Shown in pieces: positions 3,782 through 27,600 of a stretch of DNA of 64,000 nt. Origin of the DNA: Bugula neritina (Eukaryota > Animalia > Bryozoa); assembly GCA_964035545.1 (NCBI GenBank), contig OZ037766.1, forward strand, positions 16,420,722-16,484,721, in the 5' to 3' direction. The notes beneath the pieces were generated by a model. The model had not been told where the DNA came from and made no database searches. It saw only the letters and a program-made list of their open reading frames with translations. Position 1 is the stretch's first letter, and each line of letters begins with the position of its first letter. Position numbers and translations under genes: made by a program.

Positions 3782-6700
3782 TTAGACTAGTGAAGAGGCA
3801 GAGTCTCTTTCATGTGTAGGAGTTGTACTACCATCCCTTGTTTTGCAGTATTTTGAATACTTCATTTTCTGCTGGTACTGAATTCGAGGTTTAGCTATAA
3901 ACTTTCGAATTCGTTGAAATGCTCGTGTCATCACTTTCTCGTCCGTGTCTTGAAGCTACATGTATTCAAAAAATATTTGAGAGTCAAGCTACAGGCAAAT
4001 GTACAACATATATATTGACATAGCCAGAGATAACCATAATTACATATAAGAACAATTACTAAATTTTCTATAATATAAAAAGTATTTTATTTTATATTAT
4101 TTATAATATCACATTAAGCTGATAAATTTGCAAATAATATAGCAAAGTTAGATAGGCAAATTATATTGTGGGAGAATGATAGTATATAAAACAGCCTTCA
4201 AATTTTAGTCCTTAATCTCTCACTTAAAAAAATGATGCTACAGGCATTGCTAGATAATACAAGTACCACAACATATAAATTATAGATAATGCATTTTCGG
4301 TATATTGTATAAAAGAGCGATTTATTTATATAATTTTTATGTCATGTAATTTCAATTTTTTTTATTTTAATCAAGTTTAGCACCACTTGGACTTCAGATA
4401 TTTCATCTCAAATATGTAGAAAGTATAGCGCCATTTATTCTACTACATCAAAATAGAGCTGAGGCAGCATCAAGTGGGAACAATGTGGAGAGATAACTCT
4501 GTATATTTCACACTCACGTCAATGACATTGTCAGTGAGCAAAGATGTGAAAGGTGCTTCTATGGCATCTTCATTCAGCTTCTCTCGTACAATTATCAGAA
4601 TTTTGTTAGGTTGGTAATGCTGCTGTCCATATGCCTCTCTGCCTGCAGTTGGTAGGCAATCGCTTAATTAGTGCATCAACTGAAGCAGGTGCAAACTGAA
4701 AAAGCTTGTGTTTTAGATGAGAAATTTAGCAAAGTAAATTGACCTTGCAAGAAATTCAACCCGCACCAGAAATTCATTATGAAAAGTAGAAAGCCTAAAC
4801 TATCGGAATTTGTTCGTTGCTGCACCTAAATGATAATTTCCCCCATTTTAAAGTAAAATAAGGGGTTTTTGATACAAGTAAATCTTTGGCAAACTAAGCA
4901 GTGTAGATTAAAATGAATAATTATTTTATGCTCATCAAGCAGCTTATTCTCTAAATAGCATTGATGAATTGTGCAAAGTCAAATCAATACATATATTATT
5001 TAAACTCAATTGTGCTGAGATTATGCAAAATATTGAACTTTAGTATGTAGCATTTCAAGAGCTGCTAGAACTGCAAATGTCTGCCCGATCTCTACATTAC
5101 TCTTGAGTACTCATACCTGCTAGATCAGCTTGACCTCTACATTCAGCATCACCAAGAAACTCATTGCTTAGAACTATGATAATCTTCCTGCTTTTTTCCA
5201 TTCCAAGCAACATTTCTGTGTATTTATGTGACCCTGGTAAAGCTTCTCTGTCACTGATGTACAGCTTCAACTTGTTCTATAATAATAATTTAATTAGATG
5301 TGAATAGCAGATCTATGATCAGAGAGTAAACTAAACCAAATTATTATAATTATTATAATATAATTTGTGCTGATGCCGTATTTGAGTTGCAAGGTATAAA
5401 TATTAAACTAAGAAATTAGCTTATAGCACATTTGCATATAATTTACTCGTGATTTAATCATGAATATAGCTATACACCGTTTATGTTTAGGGTGCAATAG
5501 CTCCTTTATAACTTGGATATTTTAGAAGTGCCACTATAGTAATTATTCTAGTATATCAATGTAACGTTGTAATTAGGTTATAAATTAACTTTTTTCTTTT
5601 GTGAGATATTGCATTGCTTACTAACATTTTATTTTTTACTGCACCTTAGCTGAACATTAATAAAAGATATCCAGCTGTAAAGTTTGATTCCTTAAAAACT
5701 ATTGTATCAATTTCGAGATATTTACAAGTGAAAATAATAAGAGACTTGCCTTTAAATTCTTGTTTTCTTTTTCAGGATTTTCAATTGCTGGTATTAGACG
5801 GTTGACCACAAAAGCTGCGTCGTTTACTGCATTAGAATTGTACACGACAAAAGCATCATATAAGCATACGTGTTCAGAATGAACAGCAAAAATTTGATTC
5901 TTGACAGCTGAAAACACTACTTTAATGTGAGTTATGTACCAACGATATTTGTAAATCGGTATTGCTATCAGGACTACAGCAATTAAACCAAAGAATCCTC
6001 CGAGAAATCCAACAACATAGCGTTCAGCATCACATGCATAAGAATCTCTCTTGTACTTGTATACTTTCACTCCTTCTAACTTTTTTGATGGTCCATGGCA
6101 ATCAATTCTACCTGCTACTGGCACATAATTTGTATTTCTAATCCATGTCTGAACAAAATTTTGTGTGCAGGTGCATTGGAGAGCATTTCCTCGTAAGCCA
6201 AACTCCTCCAAAAAGTTTAGACTATCTAGGTGTTCAAGGAAACCTTCATCTAACATTGAAATAGAGTTGCTGTCATATAGCAACTTCCGCAAGTGTTTTA
6301 GATGTTCTATAGATTTAACATTTATTTCTCGCAAAAAATTATGGCGAAGGTCTAAGATTTCTAACAATGGATTATTTCTTACATAATCTAATTCAACGTG
6401 AGAAATTAAATTATTATGAACATATAATTCAGTCAATTTGGACATTTTTTCAAATAGCTGTTTTTTGAGGTAGACTATTTCGTTACCAGATATGTCTAAG
6501 ACAATCAAACTTTGCAAGTTTGAAATAAGTTTCTGGTTGTAGTCCCATCTAGTGATAAGTTGATTGTTCGCCAAATACAAATGAGTTAGAGAGTCACAAA
6601 GACCTTCAACTGTTGCAAGCTGGTTATGGTTAAAACGAAGTGTTCTTAAATTTACTAGATGTACGCAGCTCTCCTTGAAAAGACTGTTGTTAGCAAGTTT

Positions 6701-8328
6701 CAAGTGCGTTAAAAAGTTGTGGTCAAGATTAATCTCTTCTAAGTAGTCAAATGAAAAGCCATCTACAGTGAATGTTGGGATTCTGTGCAACTGGTTGTAA
6801 CTGAGATCCAAGTGTCTGATGGGAGCAACTTGAAGGTAAAATCCTACATTGTAGTTTCTCAAAAAGTCTGCATAGATGCTGTTACTGGCTATGGTCAGTG
6901 AATGTAATTTAGATTGATTTCGTGATGAAAACAACTTAACAGGTCTGTTGCCTAATGGGTTATCAATTAATGACAAGTATGAGAGATTAGGGCACCCATC
7001 AAAAATATTGTCTTCAACTATGGAGAATCTACACCAATCCAGATATAGCTCTGATAATTCGTTGAACCCATCGAATATGGACTTTTTCAAAATTGCACCA
7101 AACAGCAAATCACTATAACGAGTGTTCAGAACTCGAAGATGTGGTAGCCTTTTAAGTCCTGCTAAGGTGACATTTGTCAAGGTGCATACTGGGTCTGCTG
7201 GTGTGTCAGCTCGCCATCTTATTAGCGAGAGAGCTCTGATAGAAGAAGGCAAGTTTTCAAAGAGTTCTCTCACACTCATAGGACAGTTCAAATATTGTTT
7301 TGCAGCACTGATATCTAAATCTTCCAGGAGCCGGCAATTCTTGAATATGGTTTGATTGCCACCATAAATATTTGAGTAAGTTAAATTTAGAACTTTTATT
7401 GTATTTTGTATTGTTTCAAAAAATGTAGCAGGAATTTGATTCTCACACTTCTGTTCAACTGTAAAATTACTGAGGTTTATGTTTTTAATTTTAGTTAGCT
7501 GCTTGAATTCATTGCCAATAGTCTGGCAGTTGGAATGTTGGATGTGGTTGAATTCTAAGGATAGGTTTGTGAGGAGTGGCACTGTTTTAAACACTTGGTG
7601 AGGTATACTTGTTAGTTTGTTGAACTCTAGCTGCAGTACTTTTAATGAAGGAGGCAAAAAACATTCAGGTAATATTTTTATATTAGTTTCTCTGATTACC
7701 AACTGTTCAAGTTTTTTCAAATCTGTGAACACAAATTCTGCAACTGAAATAATGTTCTTTCCAGAAATGACAACTATCTTTAAGTCAGCGTATTTGGAAA
7801 ATTTACTTTTTTCAAGAGTAGCATTGGGACCAGTGTAAAACAGTTCCAAACTACTGATGCTAACTGGTAATTTTTGAGGTAAAATAGCCAAAGGATTGTT
7901 TGTTTCACAAATAGCAGTGTAATCACAGCGAGAGCAGAGTTCAGGCTCCTCAGAGCAGAAGAATGCTGACAAGCTAGATGTGAGCAGCATGATGATAACG
8001 CTTCTTAAAATATTCCACTGGAAAAACAACTCCTGGAACAAAGTGCAACTAGGTAAAGTGAAATTTTAGCAAAACAATATGGGCTACTGAGTCTAAAACA
8101 GTTATTAAAAAATTATTGACTTTACAGGCCTAGACTAGCATCGTATTTAAAAAGCATTTTCTTGCAACTCTGTTTATGAAAATAAACTTATTAGTACAAA
8201 GGATGAAGATTGTATTTTATAAAAAAAAATTTGTACCCAACACTGCTTCATTGTTTAAAACTACACAGACTAAAACAATTTAAATTCACTTACAAAATAA
8301 TATAATAATAGAGTCTTACCAGAAACAT
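3782..8328 (-). CDS. Toll-like receptor A (single-cysteine-cluster type, LRR-TM-TIR), about 916 aa; exons 8328-8320, 8032-5750, 5276-5117, 4642-4518, 3955-3782
   Basis: Signal-like N-terminus, many LxxLxLxxNxL repeats, LRRCT (NALQCTC...C...C), TM helix, TIR box 1 (YDAFVVYN). Spliced exons add KLYISDREALPG (BB loop) and SRKIIIVLSNEF, ending ...ERDSASSLV*. Intron 2 has a GC donor (AAG|GCAAGT). Confidence 0.93.
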
Positions 8329-10652
8329 GGTGTACTAGCTCCTGTTAAGCTCACGGGGACACGAAGCTCTCAATTATTAAGGTACTAATATAAAATGCTT
8401 ACTGTGTGCTAACAGGAAAACAGAAGACACTAGCATGACAGAATGTAAACACACTAATATAACAGCTGTCAAAGTTTTATCAGTTACTGACTAAAGTAGG
8501 AAATATTTTCTCAGCTTCTTTAGACTGATAATTGAATAGATAGCAAGATAACCTCTTTTTTAACATGTTCTATCATGTGAGAAAATCCAATTATCAATAC
8601 TTCATTGATCAAAACAAATATATGTCTCAAAATCTGTTTTCTGCAGTACCTACATTATACTGTGATTATTTTCAGCAACACTATAAATAAACAAGCTGTC
8701 ATAAATATAAGAAGACTTTAAAAGAATATAGATCACATACATTATGTGTGCAAATCATAAAACTGTACTAAAAAATAATGCCCTTGTAGCAAAATTTACA
8801 GAGATGACACACTAAGAAACTGTATTTTGCTTTTAGAATTATTTTTCAAAAGAGATTTGATCTACTGCATAAGGCTGCATGCTAGTTTAAGTGCACCTTT
8901 AACTTTTTTTATGTTTTTTATTTCAGTAAAATTGCATGATAACATTTAAATGTTTGAAATCTGTAACTAGAAGCCGTTGTTTAAGCACAATCTGTAATTT
9001 ACCAAAAACTCATATCAGCAATAATTTATATATGATGTAATGCAGAGTTGATCAATTATATTTATTATAATGGTATTTATTTGCCATGCTGAGTCATAAT
9101 ACTTATACTAACTTTACATCCAAATAGTCCAATTTGTCTATGACACACAATATTATATTTTGTTATTAAAATGTGATTGTGGCTTAAGGCTGTATCTGTC
9201 AATATTATTAGTTAAAGAGTAAAGTGAACTAGTTTGCTCTCAGCTTATTTTCCAGAAAGTATGCAATCCTTAAGATATTAGCCCAGTTTTATAATATTAT
9301 ACCTTGGATGACATCAAATTCTCTCAATCAGAATGGTTTACGGGGTAAGCACCTCAAAATGTACCCTGTATCAAACTCAGTGACCAAAAATCGCAGTTGG
9401 TTGCTACTTTTATAAAAATATTTATCTAAATTTTAACAACATATGAGAGATGCCAAGTTTTCTTTAATGTAACTTATAGCTATGTTAAGCTAGATTTCAC
9501 TTTTTATACTCATGCATGCATAATACATAGTTACCAGAGGTTTTGTAGTATACATAATTGGAGGCAGTTATAAACACACGCTAACTCCGGGCAGCAAATC
9601 TAGTAGCCTACTATAAGTCATACTAGCACATTTTCTGTTACTCTTTCTATTGTCATATATTTGTTATTTCACGATATATATTAAAGCTTTTAATAGAATA
9701 TTAAGTTATCATAAGAGATAACAGATTCAAAGGATTACCAATGCCAAATTAATTATAAAATGCAATATACATTGGTTCAGATGTTGATCTCACAAGCTGT
9801 GTGTTTGTGGAATAAACATTTGAAAGTAACAGATATTGTAGACATTTGCAGAAAGAATGATAAAAAACTTACATATTTGAAAAGAAAGTTCATCTGAAGC
9901 AATAAAATATTGTTTCATACCTTTTTGCTAAATTTAGTCAAGTTATAATTTATATAGAAGAGCATTTTCACTGCAGTTATTAGATTCAATATCCCTAACA
10001 GAAGTGCTTTTAGCTGAAAAGTTTAGACTGCGTCTGGCAAGTTTAGTGGGTTATAATGTAAATTCCATGAGTTATTTTGTATACAACAAATCCTTATTTG
10101 CTCGCTAAATATGAATTTAAATAGACTACAAAATTGTTCAAGTAGCTATTGGAACTTTTTTATTAATCAACGGTTTTTTTAAAAAAAGAGATAAAAATTA
10201 ATGTAGAACAAAAATTAGTAACGTATTCATCCACACACTAATAACCATCTTCATCATAACATTATTATACTGACTATACATGTTTACAATCAACATGAAA
10301 CTTTTTAGCAAAATGTTGCAAATCATCAGTTTATAGATCATGTTTGTGAGTAAAGTTTATATATATCTTTTTCTGTTTGTTTTGTGTTTCAATCTAAATT
10401 ATTTCAAATAGTTTAATTTAAAAAGATTTCAATCATTTCTTGACAGATGATGAAATTCCTAACTTGAAGCTTCCAATTATTGTAGTGTCCCTGGAAGGTA
10501 GGTGCAATAATCGAGAAATTGAGAAAAACCTATGTTCTAGATTAAAAATGTAGCAAAAGAAGCTATATTTTTGCAAGATTTTCAACGTATGCCCCAAGCC
10601 AGAATGAAAGAAGTTAGGCTATCTCAATTTCTCAACTACTGCTCCTAAATGT

Positions 10653-18641: not shown

Positions 18642-21600
18642 TTACGATGCTTTGTCTCTGCTGGAGGGCCTCTTGGGAAGGAAGACGACTGCTGCTAAAG
18701 CAAGGATATGCATCCAGCAGTACTGAGACCTGGAAACATACAAAGAGATGTAAGCTAACAGAACAAAACAGTTGCTTCTAACAGCATGATGGCAAGTATT
18801 AACTCATATATTAGCTGTCAAACATCTACTGCATGTTTCTCTCTATAACCTTTAGCTTCAGCAGCATAGTACAGAACTGCAGTATGCTTCAATATAATAC
18901 ATTATATATTGAAAACAAAAGTCATATATTACCAGCTATATCTTAGGGCGCTTTCGGATTCCCTACGCGTAGGGGTAACTGTAGGCCCTACGCGATGCCC
19001 ATTCGGTAACCATCACGCGTAGGGCGCAATTATTCGAGCAATTACAGTAATTTTACTCTGACATTGCGTCATTTTTGTAATCGAGTGTAAGCGATAGAAT
19101 AGGTAGTTACCCCTACGCGTACCCGGGGCACTCGTGGTTACCGAATGCGTCGATTACAATATTAGCCTTAGCAACCAACAGTATCTACTAAGATTCTCAA
19201 GCTACATTAGCGATGCCATAAATGTTTTGTAATTTTGCTGTGTATACTAGTAACGCCTGCTGCAGACGAATTCGTCTGCACAATATTTTCCCGTACAGAG
19301 CAACGACTAATCCTTCACGCATTCATTCAACTCAAAACTATGGAGTCTTCAAGCAACTGTAAGTAGCAATAACTTACCATGGTGTAAACTTACCCACGAA
19401 TATTAACGTCTATTGTCATTATGTATGTTATATTAATTTACAAGTTGATTTATAATAAAACATTACCACAAATTAAAAGTGAAGATTACTTATAACTTTT
19501 TAAGATAATGGAGAAGAAGCAACGTAAGTATATTATTGACCATGTTTGTGTTATGAGTTTTTATTTCAAATTTAATGTTTTGAAGAAAATTTTTCGTTAC
19601 TATATTTCATATAGCATAAATTATATCAAATATAGCATAGATACATGTATCCTGTAATAAGTGTTGGTCAAGGACTACTAGTACTATCGCTACTATGAGT
19701 ACTACGGTGTCCGTGTTCAGAAATGAAGAGAAGGCAAATCTATACTCAAGTTTCCCAACATTTTTAAGCTCCAACACTGAAGAAACAGACCAGCTGAAGC
19801 AGTTGCTTCCAATAATATTGGAATCGCTTGAAAGTAGCAGCAGCAGCTCTTCATCTGAGGATGATGACACCATGCCAAACATACCAAGGCACCTCCCCAA
19901 GAGCAGACGATATTTTGATATGATAAGAGATATGGATAATGAAGAGTTCTTTACTCATTTTAGAATGGGAAGGGGTTAGTGTGTTTCAAATTTCAGTCTG
20001 TAGCACTACATCACTTGATAACATTACTCATGCTAGCAATAATAACACTACACAATAATCAAAACAGCATGGTATGATCACTAAATGTAAGTTGCATAAA
20101 AAATATGATGTGCATAGATGTTAATGCTGAAATGTGGTTAACTTTGCAGATGCATTCAACTATGTTGTGCAAATGATGACAGAATCCAGGCTTACTCCGC
20201 ACAGCCACGGTCTAACCAGCCAACAAAAGTGCCTGGTAGCTTTATGGTATTTAGGCAGTGACAGTAGCTTTAGGTAAATCTACTAAGTTAAACATATTCT
20301 TATAGCTTACAAATTAGAATATCTATTCAAATACAATAATTTAAATGATAATAAAACTCAGGTTACAATATTTATAGGACGACATCGCAAAAATTTGGCT
20401 TGTCAATGAGCACTGCACACAGTAGTTTAGAAGAGCTAGTTGGTGCAGTCTTGAAGAATCTTTCTAAAATCATAAAAATGCCAGAAAGTGTAGAAGAATT
20501 AAGAGAAAGCACTCAGCTCTTCTACAAATACAAGTTCCCAAATGTGGTGGGCGCCATAGATGGCACCATGATAGAAGTGCATCCACCGCAAAGAGAAAAA
20601 TTGGACTTCTTTACTAGAAAATATAATACTAGCGTCAATTTGACAGCATTGTGTAATGGCAACAAAAAATTTTTATATATAAATGTTGGGCAGTCGGCAA
20701 GATGCCATGACAGCCATATTTTTCAGAGATCCAAGCTAGCTTCAAAGCCATTGAACAGGCAATATCACATCATAGGCGATGCAGCATACGGGCTGAGTGA
20801 GAACATGATGGTGCCATACGTAAAGCCAGAGGGTTCACCGATTAAGGAGATCTACAACAAAACGCATTCATCGACAAGAATGGTGATCGAAAGAAGCTTT
20901 GGAGATCTAAAGAACCGTTGGCTTAGACTTTCTAATCTGAAAACTAGCATCGAATTGGCAAATAAAATAATAGCAGTCTGCTGCTGTCTTCATAACATTT
21001 GTATTGAGTATGGAGACATAAAAGCTGTTCAGCCTACATTGGCTGAGGACAGTTACCGTATTTTGGACTTTGCAAATGCTGCAGAAAAAAGAGATGTGAT
21101 CGCAAATTATATTTTTAGCAATTAATATTATGTTAAACTTTTGATGTTAAATTTCATTCATTTTCAGTTTTGTTTTAATAAATTGTCTGCAACTTCAAAC
21201 AAATTAAATTTTTTTTCTAAACAATATTACCCAGTCTTGTATGCAGTATTGAACCAGATTAAATTATTAATCCTATAACTACATGACTAACACAAGGCAA
21301 TGATGGAATTTTGTTACAGTTACCAAGAACTACAGGATGTTGAAGATATGTCTTGGAGATTATGTGAAAGTTCATCTGAAAGTCAATGCAGAGGTAGGAA
21401 ATAAAACTTACCTTGTTTGCATTACACGAAGTCTAAACAGGAGCTATGAAATGCTTCACTTAATTCCATCTTCATATCTTTTTCAGTGAGTACTAAAGAA
21501 AAGCCAGGGGAAGACCCAAGTGAGGTAAGCAAAATTGTTATCACAAACAGCATTGTGCATCTCAGTTACAAGTTGTTACGAACAAAATACAGTTGAAAAA

Positions 21601-24600
21601 ATTCCAATTTTCACAGTTCACCGTTGAAGACACCAACAAGCTGCTGTGGTGGTGGCAGCACTCTGGCAAACAGCAAATGACACTGGCCAAAAATAATGTT
21701 GAGAAGTCAAAAGTTTTCAAGAATATGGCTGCTCACTTAGAAGAAAAGTATAACTCTAGAACTTATTCGATTACACGTCTACATATTCTTCAAAGATTAA
21801 CTCTGAAACTATAACTAATATGGTTTAAAATTTTAGATTTACTCCGACTGCAGTCAAAAACCGATTTAATTATATCAAAAGGAAGTACAAACAGTCCTTA
21901 ACTCACAACCAAAAGTCAGGCAATAGCCCAGTAAGAACATATTCCAATAATTTCCAAAAATACAATCTTTTATCAACTCAAATGAAGATTATTACATTTA
22001 CATATACCTCTAATTTTACCCTCTTTCCAGAGCAGTTTCCAATATGCTTCTCAGTGTGAAGAAGCTTTCTACAAAGACCGAGATGTAAATCCGATTGGGG
22101 TCATCGATTCTGAAGACGTAGAAACAAGGACACAAGAGAAAAGATCAAGACGTAGGCTCTCTAAGTACCAAGAGGAAAAGCTAAAAATAAAAAGAGAAGC
22201 TTTGCAATCAAAAATAAAATATAGAGAGCGCATTTCAAAAGCTTTAGAGCAGCTTGCACATAAACTTTAAACTTCAACTTATTACTACTTTCATAAAGTT
22301 CAACGCGTAATTATTTTTTTTATATTTATAGTTAATGTTGTACAGTTTAGTGTTTACAGTTTCAAGTTTGAGTTGAATTCGATATCATTATGATTGTGGT
22401 TATCGTATAAAATTATAAAAAAAATGTATTTAATTTCTATTATTAAACTAAGCGTAATAATACTGAGTATTATTACGCTTAGTTTTACTCTTAGTATTAC
22501 TATCACTATTACAAATTACAATTTTCAACTGTCACTCTTATATAAAATATAATATAAATATTATATTTAATATCAATATGAATATGACTATCAATATAAT
22601 TATAAAACTAAAATTCAATAACTAAAGGATTATGCTGCTGAATGTTAAATTGAAACTGGAACTAAGAGTGAAACTACTTATATCTGCAACTTTCATGTCA
22701 AACTCATTATTAAAATTAAAATTAGTTATAATACATGTAATTGTCATGCACAAATAGTAAAATTTCACGTTGTTGAAAAGTCCTGGAAAGAGATGAACTC
22801 ACTTAGTGTTAAACTTCCATCACGTGTTGTGAGAAATGCGTATACTTGCGTCAGTACTGCAGGGTGAAGGTTGTGTGAGATTTCAATACCGTACTCGATG
22901 GGTGTTACGGGTACCCCTACGCGATGCATTCGGTAGCCATCGCGTACCCCATCAAAAAATAAGCTCATCGAGGGGTACTCGACGGAGGAAAAGTGAGCAA
23001 ATTCATCGATGAGCCCAGTAGGCTACGCGTAGGGAATCCGAAAGCGCCCTTATACGCTTATATAGTGGCATCAACAGAAAGCCCAAACTATTATTTACAT
23101 CATAAACAGATTTTACTTACATGTATACTGCAACTGTAGGTTTAAATTCATAGATCAACATGGGTACAACCATATAGGCACAGCAACATCTTGTCCCAAC
23201 AAATGTAATAGCATCATAAATCAGTATGCTTATTTTTGATGCTTGAAAATATGGGCGTATAAACCGTCTAATCTACAGCATTAAAGAGAAATTTATAACA
23301 TATTATTTCGTAATTACTTCAGCCAATACTGTCTCTTCGTTGTTATAATTACTAAACTATATTCATACACTTTATCCACAATATACCAGATTACATAAAA
23401 CCAAAATGGCAACCAGTTGTCAATAATGCCATCTTGCACAACAAAGCTTTTGTATTTATGTTATATAATTAGACCAACAACTCCCATGTATATTACAAGA
23501 GACAACTACGTTGAAAGGCATCTTAAAAATAGAAGGCAAAGTTCAAAGATATAATAAAGCATTTAACTATATAGGGTGACTACATAAAATAACTAAAAAC
23601 ATGTTGAAAATCCTTCAAGAAACTGTGTCATGTTTCAACATCAAAACAGTAATGTGTAGTAATTTTAACATTAATTAGATTTTAGTAATATATTATTTTC
23701 AACTGTAGATTACTTTTTATCCTCAATACATGAGGCTTTGAAATACAGAGGTGAAAGTAGGAAAATGCATTATATTGGGACTTCTGCAAGAACTCAGTCT
23801 ACATTGTACTCACAGATCTGTTGGCCTCGATGAACAGAGCACCTGTGAAGAATGCCAGATAGTAACCAGGGTAGAAGCCATGCCAGAAAGCACTGACTGT
23901 AAAGACCGCTAGAGTGTTGAACTTATACGCCCTCTCATACACAGTTCTACGTAACCAGGCTAGTGTGCTGATATTCCAACTGTCCATACATATCTTCATA
24001 CTCGTACATGTCTGCATAATGATGTAACAGAACTTGATCAAGTTGATGTACCATAAATACTAATTCTTATCAGCCAATATAAAGCCACTATACAACATAG
24101 TGACAACCTTCTCCAGTTTGGTGAGTGGCATGATGACTATACTAGCTTGGACAATTGCAAATAACCACTTGTATTTAAAGTTAGTTACTAAACATGCTGT
24201 TGATCTGCAAAAATCTTTCACCAAACCAGCAGCCTACTTCTTGAAAATTTTCTAATTCAATTTTCTTTCCAATCACAATGAAAAATCGGTCAATGCGTCT
24301 TTAAGAAGGTAATCTTGAAATTCCTTAGGCATAAGCTTAACACCCAATGAAAACTGGGTGTTTGTAAATCTTCAAAATGCTAAAAACAATTAGGATCCCA
24401 ATGACTATCATGAGAGTTGAGCATATCACCTAATAGTAGCATTTCATTAGCAAAACCACGTTTTCTTTTCTATTAATTAAAAAATGAGTCATTCTAGTAT
24501 TTACAAGAGACCACTGTAAAGTATTCACCAACCTCTACTCCTAGTATGTTTGCATTCTTTATTATGCTCCAGTCCTCTGTACCATCTTCCAGAAGTCCAT

Positions 24601-27600
24601 TAAAACCTAACCCAGCTATTATATTGGTTAACTCGGCTAAAAACAACAGAAATCTGTTAGAACACTAATATTTACAACAAAAATTCATTTGTTGAAATAG
24701 TAAACTAAACTATTCAGTTGTGGAAGACCTTACAGTTTTTCACAACTGATAAAAACAAGCAAGTGAGAAAACAAAACTGCATTCTAATGTACTTCAAAAT
24801 GAATGTCACAGGTTCAACACCAAAAGTTAGCAATAGTTTTAAATTATAATAACTGAGGGAATTGAAAATAGAAACTTATAGTTGAATTTTAAACTGAAAT
24901 AAAAACCATAGAAGTAACGGAGAATAATATTCTTACCCAGACACCAGGCAAAGTAATACCTGGCTCTAACCAGTGTAATGGCAAATACCATGTACCCTAC
25001 TTTATACAGGAAACTGGCATTCAGATAGGACTCTCCTAAAACATATAAAACAAAGAACATGCAGTATAATAGAGCAACATACAACATATTCAATACATCA
25101 ATGAGGAGTTACTCACACGTGTCTAATATAAAACTGTATGAAAACTATCACTTGGTTGCTAGTAATTGAGACAATTTGGGAGTTATCAGCACGTTCAGCA
25201 TACAAACGAGTGCACAGTGGACACAAATTATAGCAACAGTGACATACCTCGAAAGTTTGGAGGGTATTGGGGGCTCAATATCAAAAAAATATACACACAC
25301 ACCCCACATATTACTGTGTTTTTCAGTGCTCTGGTCTACAAATACACATAGCAGTAATTTACTGTAACATTAAAATATCATAAAGCAGACATGTTCCCCA
25401 TGGCAGGATAATAGATGCAGAAATGTCATGAGAAAATATAACTTGCTTAGAATAACTTAAATGACACTCCCAAACAAAATACAAATGAAACATGAAACTA
25501 CAATATGCTTGTAAAACTACCTATTTACCAGTAACATGGTATGTACAAACATGTAATATAGCTTACAAGTTTAAATTAATCTTGAAAAGCATTTAATTTT
25601 AAAATTTAGACTGTTGAGGTATTAATAATGTCTACAAATAACAATAATACCTCAACATGCAGTATTGTTTCAGGTAGAGCAGACATAGCATCATTCAGCA
25701 TGCAGACACAGGAGTAACAACGTTTAATGTAAAACAGACTTCAATAATGAAGATATGCCAGGTTTTGTATGTGGGCAGTACATTTAGACACACCTAATAT
25801 GTTGATTATTGTAACAATAATACTATTGAAAAATGCTGGTCGAAGCTCTGATTAGTAACAAATGAAAAGAAATAGCAGTATAGCTTCCCATCACCAGCGA
25901 AGTAAGAACTAAGTACTACTTGGGTGAAAATAAGTAGATTTACTTACCACAAATTCTGGGGAGTCATACTCCCCTGTTTCCTATATTAACATTATAGACT
26001 GCACATTTTCGGCCAATCAAAAAACATTGTACTGCCGTAATATAATTAAAACTACATGTATATACTCAATTCAGTTCAATTCAAGTGGTAAAGAGCAGCA
26101 GATTAAAAGTTTGTCTAAAAATAACATCTTCTAGCTTTATGTCCATAGTTCAAAGACCTCAACAAACACAAACACACTGAATAAGGCATAATTGATTCAA
26201 AGGTCATATAACAAGGTTAAGTAATACTATTAAAAGGTCATGATTGTACTTGTATTTCATTAAAACCTATATTTTACTAAATGTATTCTTTATACTTCAC
26301 TATGCTAAATGCTGTTCATTTAGTGCTCAAACTTCTTAAAAATATCGTGGTTAAACATTTCTAGAAAAGTCAATGAAAAAAGCTATAATTTGTCAACTGA
26401 GACAGACTGCAACTTTAGTCACAGTTTGAAATCTTTAAAATAACACTTTCCCAAACTACACAGGATACATGCAACCTCCTAGTTACAGAGGAAGACAATA
26501 AAGTGCAAACACATACTTTATATTTAGCTTTTCCCAGTCCAATGTTCTTTCCAGTGATGAAGTCATAGTAATCTTTATAAAAGATACACGGTCCAATCAT
26601 TACGTTGTGAAATGACAGCACGTAACTCAGTAGTTCAATCAACGATGGATTTCTCCTGCAACCCAAAGTATAGTTTAAAACCCTACTACAGGTATGTTTA
26701 TGTATTAGCATATTTATAACCATTAACATGGGCCCTTTTAACCTTGAGTAAACTATGTTTGCAAAAACAGAGCAAATCCAATACATAAATACTGATAAGA
26801 ACATTGAATGGAATATTCTCTTAATATTTTTAAAGCAACAACTAGTAGGCATGTTCAGCTATCACTCAACTTGGAGAATAGTTAGGAATACATAAGGAGA
26901 TAGTAAGTTTAGCTGTGAATCTTACTTCAAAGCATATTTAAGTTGAGAGGGGTTAAGGTCCTCCTCTTTCTTTACCATACCATCGTGAAGAGAAAATGCC
27001 AAATCGCTAAGTTTCTGGGTAGTTATCATCAAAGGCCTGCAAAATGATAGCATATTCAATGAACTGATAGTAAATGGATTTATCTTATCTATAACTAATT
27101 TTAGATGCTCCAACTAGTAAATATGGTATTGCTGATGAGACTATAGGGTAAGGCATTAGGGTATAGCTAAATGACAAGACATTTACTTATTTCTTCTTCA
27201 GTAACTCGGTATACCAACAATTCATAGTAGAAAGTTTAAATCCATGCTATACAAATCTGCATTATATTTTATATTAATGATAAAAAGTAGGGTTCAAATG
27301 CTGAGAGAAAAATTGTTTGTAGTTGAGTATAAACTGTGTGGTGTCAGCTATCTAGCTATCCAGAAGTAAAGAATTCTCTAACAAACCCAAACATAAATGA
27401 GTCGCACAGGCTGTAATTGTAATTCTAAAAAACAAATCTTTAATAAAATTATAATAGAATATATTATAGATGATTGGATACATTGTAAAGCACTGAACAT
27501 AGAGTTTTCTATTACATTGTTGCAGTCACATTGTCACAGTTGTAAATTCTATCATCACACATAAACTTTGTACCATGAAAAAATGTTATCAAGACTTGCT

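Follow-up and report, generated by a model that had tools for sequence, protein, structure and literature searches.

Transposition of PIF/Harbinger DNA transposons needs two proteins, and the working assumption of the field is that two independent genes encode them. The CACTA element En/Spm makes its two proteins, TnpA and TnpD, from one precursor by alternative splicing, as was shown with complementary DNAs (cDNAs). The two PIF/Harbinger genes appear independent, unlike those of CACTA elements, and in Ping a native promoter is presumed in the intergenic region (Hancock et al. 2010, PMC2836001). Here we describe a complete PIF/Harbinger transposon of 4,104 base pairs (bp) that occupies positions 18946-23049 of a 64,000-nucleotide (nt) stretch of the genome of the bryozoan Bugula neritina (GenBank assembly GCA_964035545.1, contig OZ037766.1, positions 16,420,722 to 16,484,721 of the forward strand). 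This whole stretch is called the window, and all coordinates are those of the window unless another sequence is named. An original prediction, made from the letters of the window, had proposed that the transposase and the Myb-like protein of this element share a spliced leader of two micro-exons; its remark that the two genes are usually separate, in contrast to CACTA, is borne out by the study cited above. From comparison of copies and relatives we put the probability that the two proteins share this leader at roughly 0.47. In full-text literature searches, we found no PIF/Harbinger element reported to have exons common to its two genes or alternative splicing between them.

Like the reconstructed zebrafish element Harbinger3_DR and the plant elements PIF and Ping/Pong, the window element encodes a DDE_Tnp_4 transposase and a separate Myb/SANT-like protein, has a 3-bp TTA duplication and short terminal inverted repeats (TIRs) with subterminal repeats, and is accompanied by short Tourist-like non-autonomous families. 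It differs from them in that its genes stand in tandem, transposase first and 195 nt apart, that two ATG-bearing leader exons of 19 nt precede them, and that a conserved acceptor in the phase of the leader stands at the beginning of the first Myb exon. If both genes do use the leader, the resemblance to En/Spm would extend to a single 5' promoter, one or more shared 5' exons and alternative acceptors that yield two transposition proteins. The two elements nevertheless belong to unrelated superfamilies with unrelated proteins, En/Spm splicing is based on cDNAs whereas splicing here is read from DNA sequence alone, and the proximal product of the window element would require its own internal polyadenylation [poly(A)] site. 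With the P element of Drosophila, an analogy taken from general knowledge, only the idea of a splice choice that gates transposase is shared; splicing of the P element is tissue-restricted, whereas neither a repressor isoform nor tissue specificity is indicated for the Bugula element.

Two genes and a candidate common leader

Exon models were made by reading the three plus-strand frames together with splice signals. The window copy was aligned with eight others: L002 from the same genome (94% identity), L003 (81%), L004 (81-86%), L006 (76%), L051b (74%), L031 (86-92%), L051a, a full copy in the B. neritina assembly GCA_010799875.2 (90%), and L052, a copy on a Joint Genome Institute (JGI) metagenome contig (92%). 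A decayed subfamily of 66% identity (L035, L037) and three outside families, treated below, gave more distant comparisons.

On the plus strand, micro-exon u1 (19340-19358, ATGGAGTCTTCAAGCAACT) begins with ATG, the first after 19222, and is followed by the donor GTAAGT at 19359. Micro-exon u2 (19505-19523, ATAATGGAGAAGAAGCAAC) has the acceptor TTTTTAAG and the donor GTAAGT at 19524. Each is 19 nt long, and the joined 38 nt read MESSSNYNGEEA plus two bases (phase 2). The transposase follows in three exons. T1 (19769-19974) is an open frame with its acceptor at 19768/19769 and the donor GTTAGT; T2 (20150-20273) ends at a GTAAAT donor in phase 2 and has a homologous exon in the relatives L042-L046; T3 (20378-21125, stop codon TAA at 21123-21125) holds a complete DDE_Tnp_4 domain (PF13359: E=1.9e-31, 109 bits, profile positions 1-158 of 158) and has relatives at 47-62% identity. 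The AATAAA that had been noted at 21177-21182 is indeed there and would serve as the poly(A) signal of the transposase messenger RNA (mRNA); it is retained in the close copies and in L037 and varies in L003, L051b and L035.

The Myb gene begins on the same strand 195 nt downstream of the transposase, and the spacer carries this poly(A) signal. Upstream of its first exon, 21285-21319 contains a branch-site-like GACTAAC (A at 21290), a pyrimidine tract and a CAG acceptor. Exon M1 (21320-21393) needs phase 2 from upstream and has an internal ATG at 21348. M2 (21487-21524) is placed by its frame and splice sites. M3 (21617-21747), where the Myb/SANT-like domain starts, varies by codon position as 1/0/5 and has a homologue in relatives, M4 (21837-21930) carries Myb_DNA-bind_4 (PF13837), and M5 (22031-22270) encodes a basic coiled C-terminus with the stop codon TAA and has a homologue in L042 and L047. 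The match of M4 alone to PF13837 is weak (E=0.0075) but consistent with a Myb/SANT-like protein; the near-identical B. neritina protein P0037 matches with E=1.7e-5 and 25.6 bits, just below the 27-bit cut-off. The predicted lengths of 371 or 387 amino acids (aa) for the transposase and 204 aa for the Myb protein follow from the exon lengths. Both gene models and the identity of the element are supported as first described.

The shared leader would work as follows. Transcripts would begin at about 19230-19330, within the 5' subterminal region, and would have their first AUG in u1; splicing of u1 to u2 would give a 12-codon leader that ends in phase 2. Joining of the u2 donor to the nearby weak AAG acceptor at 19769 would then yield the transposase mRNA, ending past the AATAAA at 21177. 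Joining of the same donor to the distant strong CAG acceptor at 21320 would instead remove the entire transposase cassette as an intron and yield the Myb mRNA, so that one promoter would provide both transposition proteins, as in En/Spm. Competition between splicing and polyadenylation, as originally proposed, would set the ratio of the two proteins and could restrict the transposase to certain tissues, both of these points being inferences.

Leader, acceptors and alternative starts

The micro-exon coordinates, the GTAAGT donors and the phase-2 end of the leader all check out on the sequence. So do the predicted in-frame joins to 19721, 19769 and 21320: AG ends at 19720, 19768 and 21319, and each exon supplies one base. 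GTAAGT occurs 27 times on the plus strand of the 64 kb, and the 355 nt upstream of ATG 19695 contain two where about 0.15 are expected. All six copies that cover the leader (76-94% identity) retain the ATG, both 19-nt lengths and both AAG acceptors, and no indels were found in u1 or u2 among the compared copies. The u1 donor reads GTAAGT in 6/6 of them and the u2 donor in 4/6, the exceptions being GCAAGT in L004 and a 6-nt insertion in L002 that leaves GTACTA. Mean pairwise identity is 0.97 over the 22 nt after the u1 donor, 0.965 for u2 and 0.90 for the 20 nt before it, compared with 0.77-0.82 in the surroundings; the best-conserved 19-nt windows of the 473-nt leader region are exactly the u1 donor and the u2 acceptor/exon. 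An unspliced leader would place nine AUGs ahead of ATG 19695.

RNA folding revealed no structure beyond that of shuffled sequences after the u1 donor (z=-0.45), at u2 (z=+0.73) or at the Myb acceptor (z=+1.56). The likeness of the two micro-exons, from which a duplication had been suggested, is present but modest (local alignment score 28 versus 18.7±3.6 for shuffled sequences, equalled by 2.4% of shuffles). Used alone as a 19-mer against metagenome contigs, u2 gave 12 unrelated chance matches. Two further observations concern this region. A perfect 20-nt palindrome, TGCAGACGAATTCGTCTGCA, lies at 19258-19277 between a TATA-like ATAAAT (~19217-19224) and the u1 ATG; it is partly retained in other copies and could be a regulatory site or a hairpin of the 5' untranslated region (UTR). 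In L052 (1-3384), the copy is broken 5 nt past u2 by another mobile element with a 341-aa open reading frame (ORF) and a DUF5641-like piece.

At the transposase end of the leader intron, 19695-19768 on the plus strand would be coding only if ATG 19695 or the acceptor at 19721 were used, and is probably intronic. L051a, in which 356 codons of transposase exons are otherwise intact, has a TAA there; L002 has a 16-nt deletion plus TAA, and L003 an insertion of 1 nt. These are three of the six disabling lesions of the close copies, in 74 of 1152 nt (6%; binomial P=0.0046). Variants by codon position show no bias there (5/1/5), but are distributed as 6/6/20 in T1 (19769-19974; P=0.0007). Within T1, 19769-19871 already varies in the manner of coding sequence (3/1/7), upstream of 19872, the next in-frame ATG after 19695. 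The segment 19695-19768 therefore behaves as non-coding sequence. Lesions and lack of codon bias on one side of 19769 and a coding signature on the other point to a start codon supplied by the leader and favour 19769 over 19721 as the functional acceptor. Copy comparison thus favours the predicted leader exons as real and the route to the transposase through 19769. The alternative acceptor at 19721, which had been given equal standing, is disfavoured by it; so is a transposase start at ATG 19695, which the prediction had named as an outcome contrary to itself. We consider the splice from leader to transposase likely.

At the Myb end, the pyrimidine tract and the AG at 21319 are retained in every lineage, including L035 and L037. 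A branch-like CTAAC or CTAAT (CCAAT in L003) occurs 20-30 nt upstream in the window copy, L002, L051a, L052, L003, L051b, L035 and L037. Most of the spacer is barely alignable in the L035/L037 subfamily, in which a homologue of M1 lies downstream of T3 on the same strand. Four variants occur in 21320-21347 among the close copies. Each falls on a third codon position (0/0/4, P=0.012), and the one at base 21320 itself would be a synonymous change in an AC+N codon. L003 and L051b have a 9-nt in-frame indel in the same interval. The 3' splice site at 21319 thus seems to be real and long conserved, with coding sequence directly after it. Third-position variation and an in-frame indel upstream of ATG 21348 likewise suggest that Myb translation seems to begin before that codon. 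Between the transposase stop and 21320, no in-frame ATG is shared by all lineages. Taken together, these data partly support the shared leader: the features that it presupposes are present, and conservation strengthens some of them.

Three other readings of these signals were weighed. The micro-exons might not be exons at all but promoter elements, protein-binding sites or ATG...GTAAGT strings that arose by chance, with the transposase beginning at ATG 19695 from a transcription start at about 19650-19690 and with a separate Myb gene. ATG 19695 does open an unbroken 93-codon frame in the window copy and occurs in five copies, no AUG lies in 19646-19694, AT-rich TATA-like strings are present at 19610-19640, and the transposase ORFs of the outside relatives start with an ATG immediately before the conserved region. 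The AAG acceptors are weak, and the leader peptide is not conserved. This reading would leave to chance two perfect GTAAGT donors in 355 nt (0.15 expected), conservation maxima that fall exactly on the predicted splice sites, and micro-exons free of indels. It would also make coding the very segment that has a stop codon in L051a, a deletion and stop in L002, an excess of lesions (P=0.0046) and no codon-position bias, and we regard it as unlikely.

A stronger competitor accepts the leader for the transposase only and places a separate, compact Myb promoter in the 195-nt spacer. It is the standard view of PIF/Harbinger genes (PMC2836001), and the outside relatives have independent, convergent genes. 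Of the three in-frame options that the original prediction had missed, two belong here: the tandem ATGATG at 21300-21305, and ATG 21241 with a donor at 21246. Translation could start at ATG 21300 without splicing (MMEFCYSYQEL...), at ATG 21241 with splicing of 21245 to 21320 through a GTATTG donor (74-nt intron, MHYQEL...), or at ATG 21348 behind a non-coding first exon. ATGATG is in frame and found in all copies of at least 86% identity, with a conserved block containing a TATA-like CCTATAAC 25-30 nt upstream; ATG 21348 is present in the window copy, L002, L051a, L052, L031, L003 and L051b. However, neither ATG 21300 nor ATG 21241 is as persistent as the acceptor and branch motif, which are retained in all lineages: the former is missing in L003, L051b, L035 and L037, and the latter is limited to the window copy and L002. 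A start near 21300 would leave the conserved 3' splice site unused. A start at 21348 would leave unexplained both the third-position-only variation upstream (P=0.012) and an out-of-frame AUG at 21337, and the spacer must in either case accommodate the transposase poly(A) site too. We regard a separate Myb promoter as plausible but somewhat less probable than the shared leader. The third missed option is the phase-2 donor of T2 at 20273, which could feed the acceptor at 21320, with or without a leader form, to give a fusion of the transposase N-terminus with Myb (AG+T, then YQELQ in frame). Like the shared leader, it requires transcription to read through the transposase gene. The sole GenBank fusion model, EB796_004088, is in another frame, contains intron sequence and looks artefactual, and we think such a fusion very improbable.

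Several observations weigh against the shared leader. Phase agreement between u2 and 21320 is expected by chance in one case in three. The third-position signal in 21320-21347 is equally explained by ATGATG 21300, which occurs in precisely the clade that yielded the signal; ATG 21241 with its donor at 21246 is in frame too, and wide conservation is seen for ATG 21348. TATA-like strings lie at both ~19217 and ~21272, and the second (CCTATAAC, ~21270-21277) could mark a separate Myb promoter or be merely part of a conserved branch region. Conservation does not extend to the leader peptide, whose codon 3 encodes S, P, A or T; constraint on the leader therefore acts on signals and length, not on protein. 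Word searches of the protein collection, run exon by exon (T3, T1 and P0032:228-393, which is the spliced Myb portion of a B. neritina protein), found no spliced protein products; the matches were genomic ORFs and two GenBank ab initio models. Most of the compared copies are dead, and few events therefore underlie the statistics. Finally, the convergent genes of the outside relatives cannot share a promoter.

The two ab initio models, B. neritina EB796_004088 and EB796_024606, are the nearest named proteins, and both are without a leader. EB796_004088, which sits on the L051 copies of GCA_010799875.2, was rejected as a real fusion product for the reasons given above. EB796_024606 was rejected as the true Myb N-terminus, since its N-terminus comes from an 810-bp insertion exactly at the Myb acceptor (L031 245-1054), and is an artefact as well.

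Convergent relatives and the origin of the tandem layout

Three related families were obtained from the ENA and from Logan contigs, with transposase identities of 62%, 50% and 47%. In 3/3 of them the Myb and transposase genes lie tail to tail on opposite strands (Myb on the minus strand; L042 2620-2799, L043 6539-7222, L047 3216-4752). In their Myb genes the N-terminal exon encodes an AT-hook (GRP; KRKGRPPGSKNKPK or EKRGRPAGAKNKPK) and is not present in the window element. This exon has no ATG, and a small upstream start exon is therefore required in the relatives too. TIRs of these outside relatives were not found by the repeat finder.

Since the outside relatives are all convergent, the tandem layout is derived in the Bugula lineage, and a shared leader would be derived with it. 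Reversal may have cost the Myb gene its first exon and promoter, which would make capture of the leader plausible. We tentatively propose that the Myb gene was turned into tandem orientation and lost its AT-hook N-terminal exon and promoter, and that both proteins are now made from one promoter through the 38-nt leader.

If the shared leader is real, it would mean that the En/Spm arrangement, in which one promoter is combined with a choice of splice sites, arose a second time independently. It would also be the first such strategy reported in the PIF/Harbinger superfamily and a testable case of a convergent expression strategy. Competition between splicing and polyadenylation would then offer a simple handle on transposase dosage. 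A single intact master copy with many short derivatives in a small, 216-Mb bryozoan genome makes the case tractable. If no junction 19523/21320 exists, the element is a well-preserved ordinary Harbinger with a spliced transposase leader.

Element anatomy, copies and surroundings

The element is flanked by TTA on both sides (18943-18945 and 23050-23052); a 3-bp TWA duplication is typical of PIF/Harbinger. Its 27-bp 5' TIR, GGGCGCTTTCGGATTCCCTACGCGTAG (18946-18972, plus strand), is 100% complementary to the 3' TIR (23023-23049, minus strand). A motif search found CTACGCG/CGCGTAG repeats and a CATTCGGTA motif in the 5' subterminal region (18963-19152), and CTACGCG with further CATTCGGTA motifs in the 3' subterminal region (22917-23022). 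All eight occurrences of CTACGCG/CGCGTAG in the 64-kb window fall within about 180 bp of the two element ends, and the CATTCGGTA/TACCGAATG motifs are confined within it to the subterminal regions (18963-19152 and 22917-23034). The subterminal motifs are probably binding sites of the element's own Myb-like protein. With a DDE_Tnp_4 transposase, a Myb/SANT-like second gene, a TWA-type TTA duplication and TIRs, membership in PIF/Harbinger is secure on every structural criterion.

The window copy is the sole copy with all exons intact in the 216-Mb genome; to judge from its sequence, it is intact, autonomous and probably active. Its first 274 positions are common to at least 20 loci and its last 161 bp (element positions 3944-4104) to at least 15. 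Short non-autonomous derivatives have paired ends 0.25-2.4 kb apart at 85-97% identity, and these shared ends suggest that the element mobilises them. A 30-nt inverted duplication at 22438-22485 is present only in the window copy and not in L002 or L003; it forms, in what is presumably the Myb 3' UTR, a perfect hairpin of 20+20 nt with its arms at 22445-22464 and 22466-22485.

In GCA_010799875.2, the full copy of 90% identity (L051 4128-8237) adjoins an inverted partial copy of 74% (8279-10481). The L035/L037 subfamily (C1:4307983-4313017) is a decayed tandem array that repeats the 3' part of T3, the spacer, M1 and M2. L006/L007 was considered as a second autonomous leader-bearing subfamily and rejected, being a 5' fragment cut off by another insertion. 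Other DDE_Tnp_4 families of the genome were likewise rejected as replicates of the architecture, as they are THAP-bearing and ISL2EU-like. This second DDE_Tnp_4 group is abundant and has an upstream ORF with a THAP-like zinc finger (e.g. L084 4935-6967 and L086 4949-7158); many of its elements have open 270-aa DDE frames and are unrelated to the two-gene architecture.

The transposon sits antisense inside an intron of an MBOAT gene. Exons of this MBOAT-family acyltransferase lie on the minus strand at 23802-24041 and 26418-26852 (PF03062, E=4e-16 and 8e-5).

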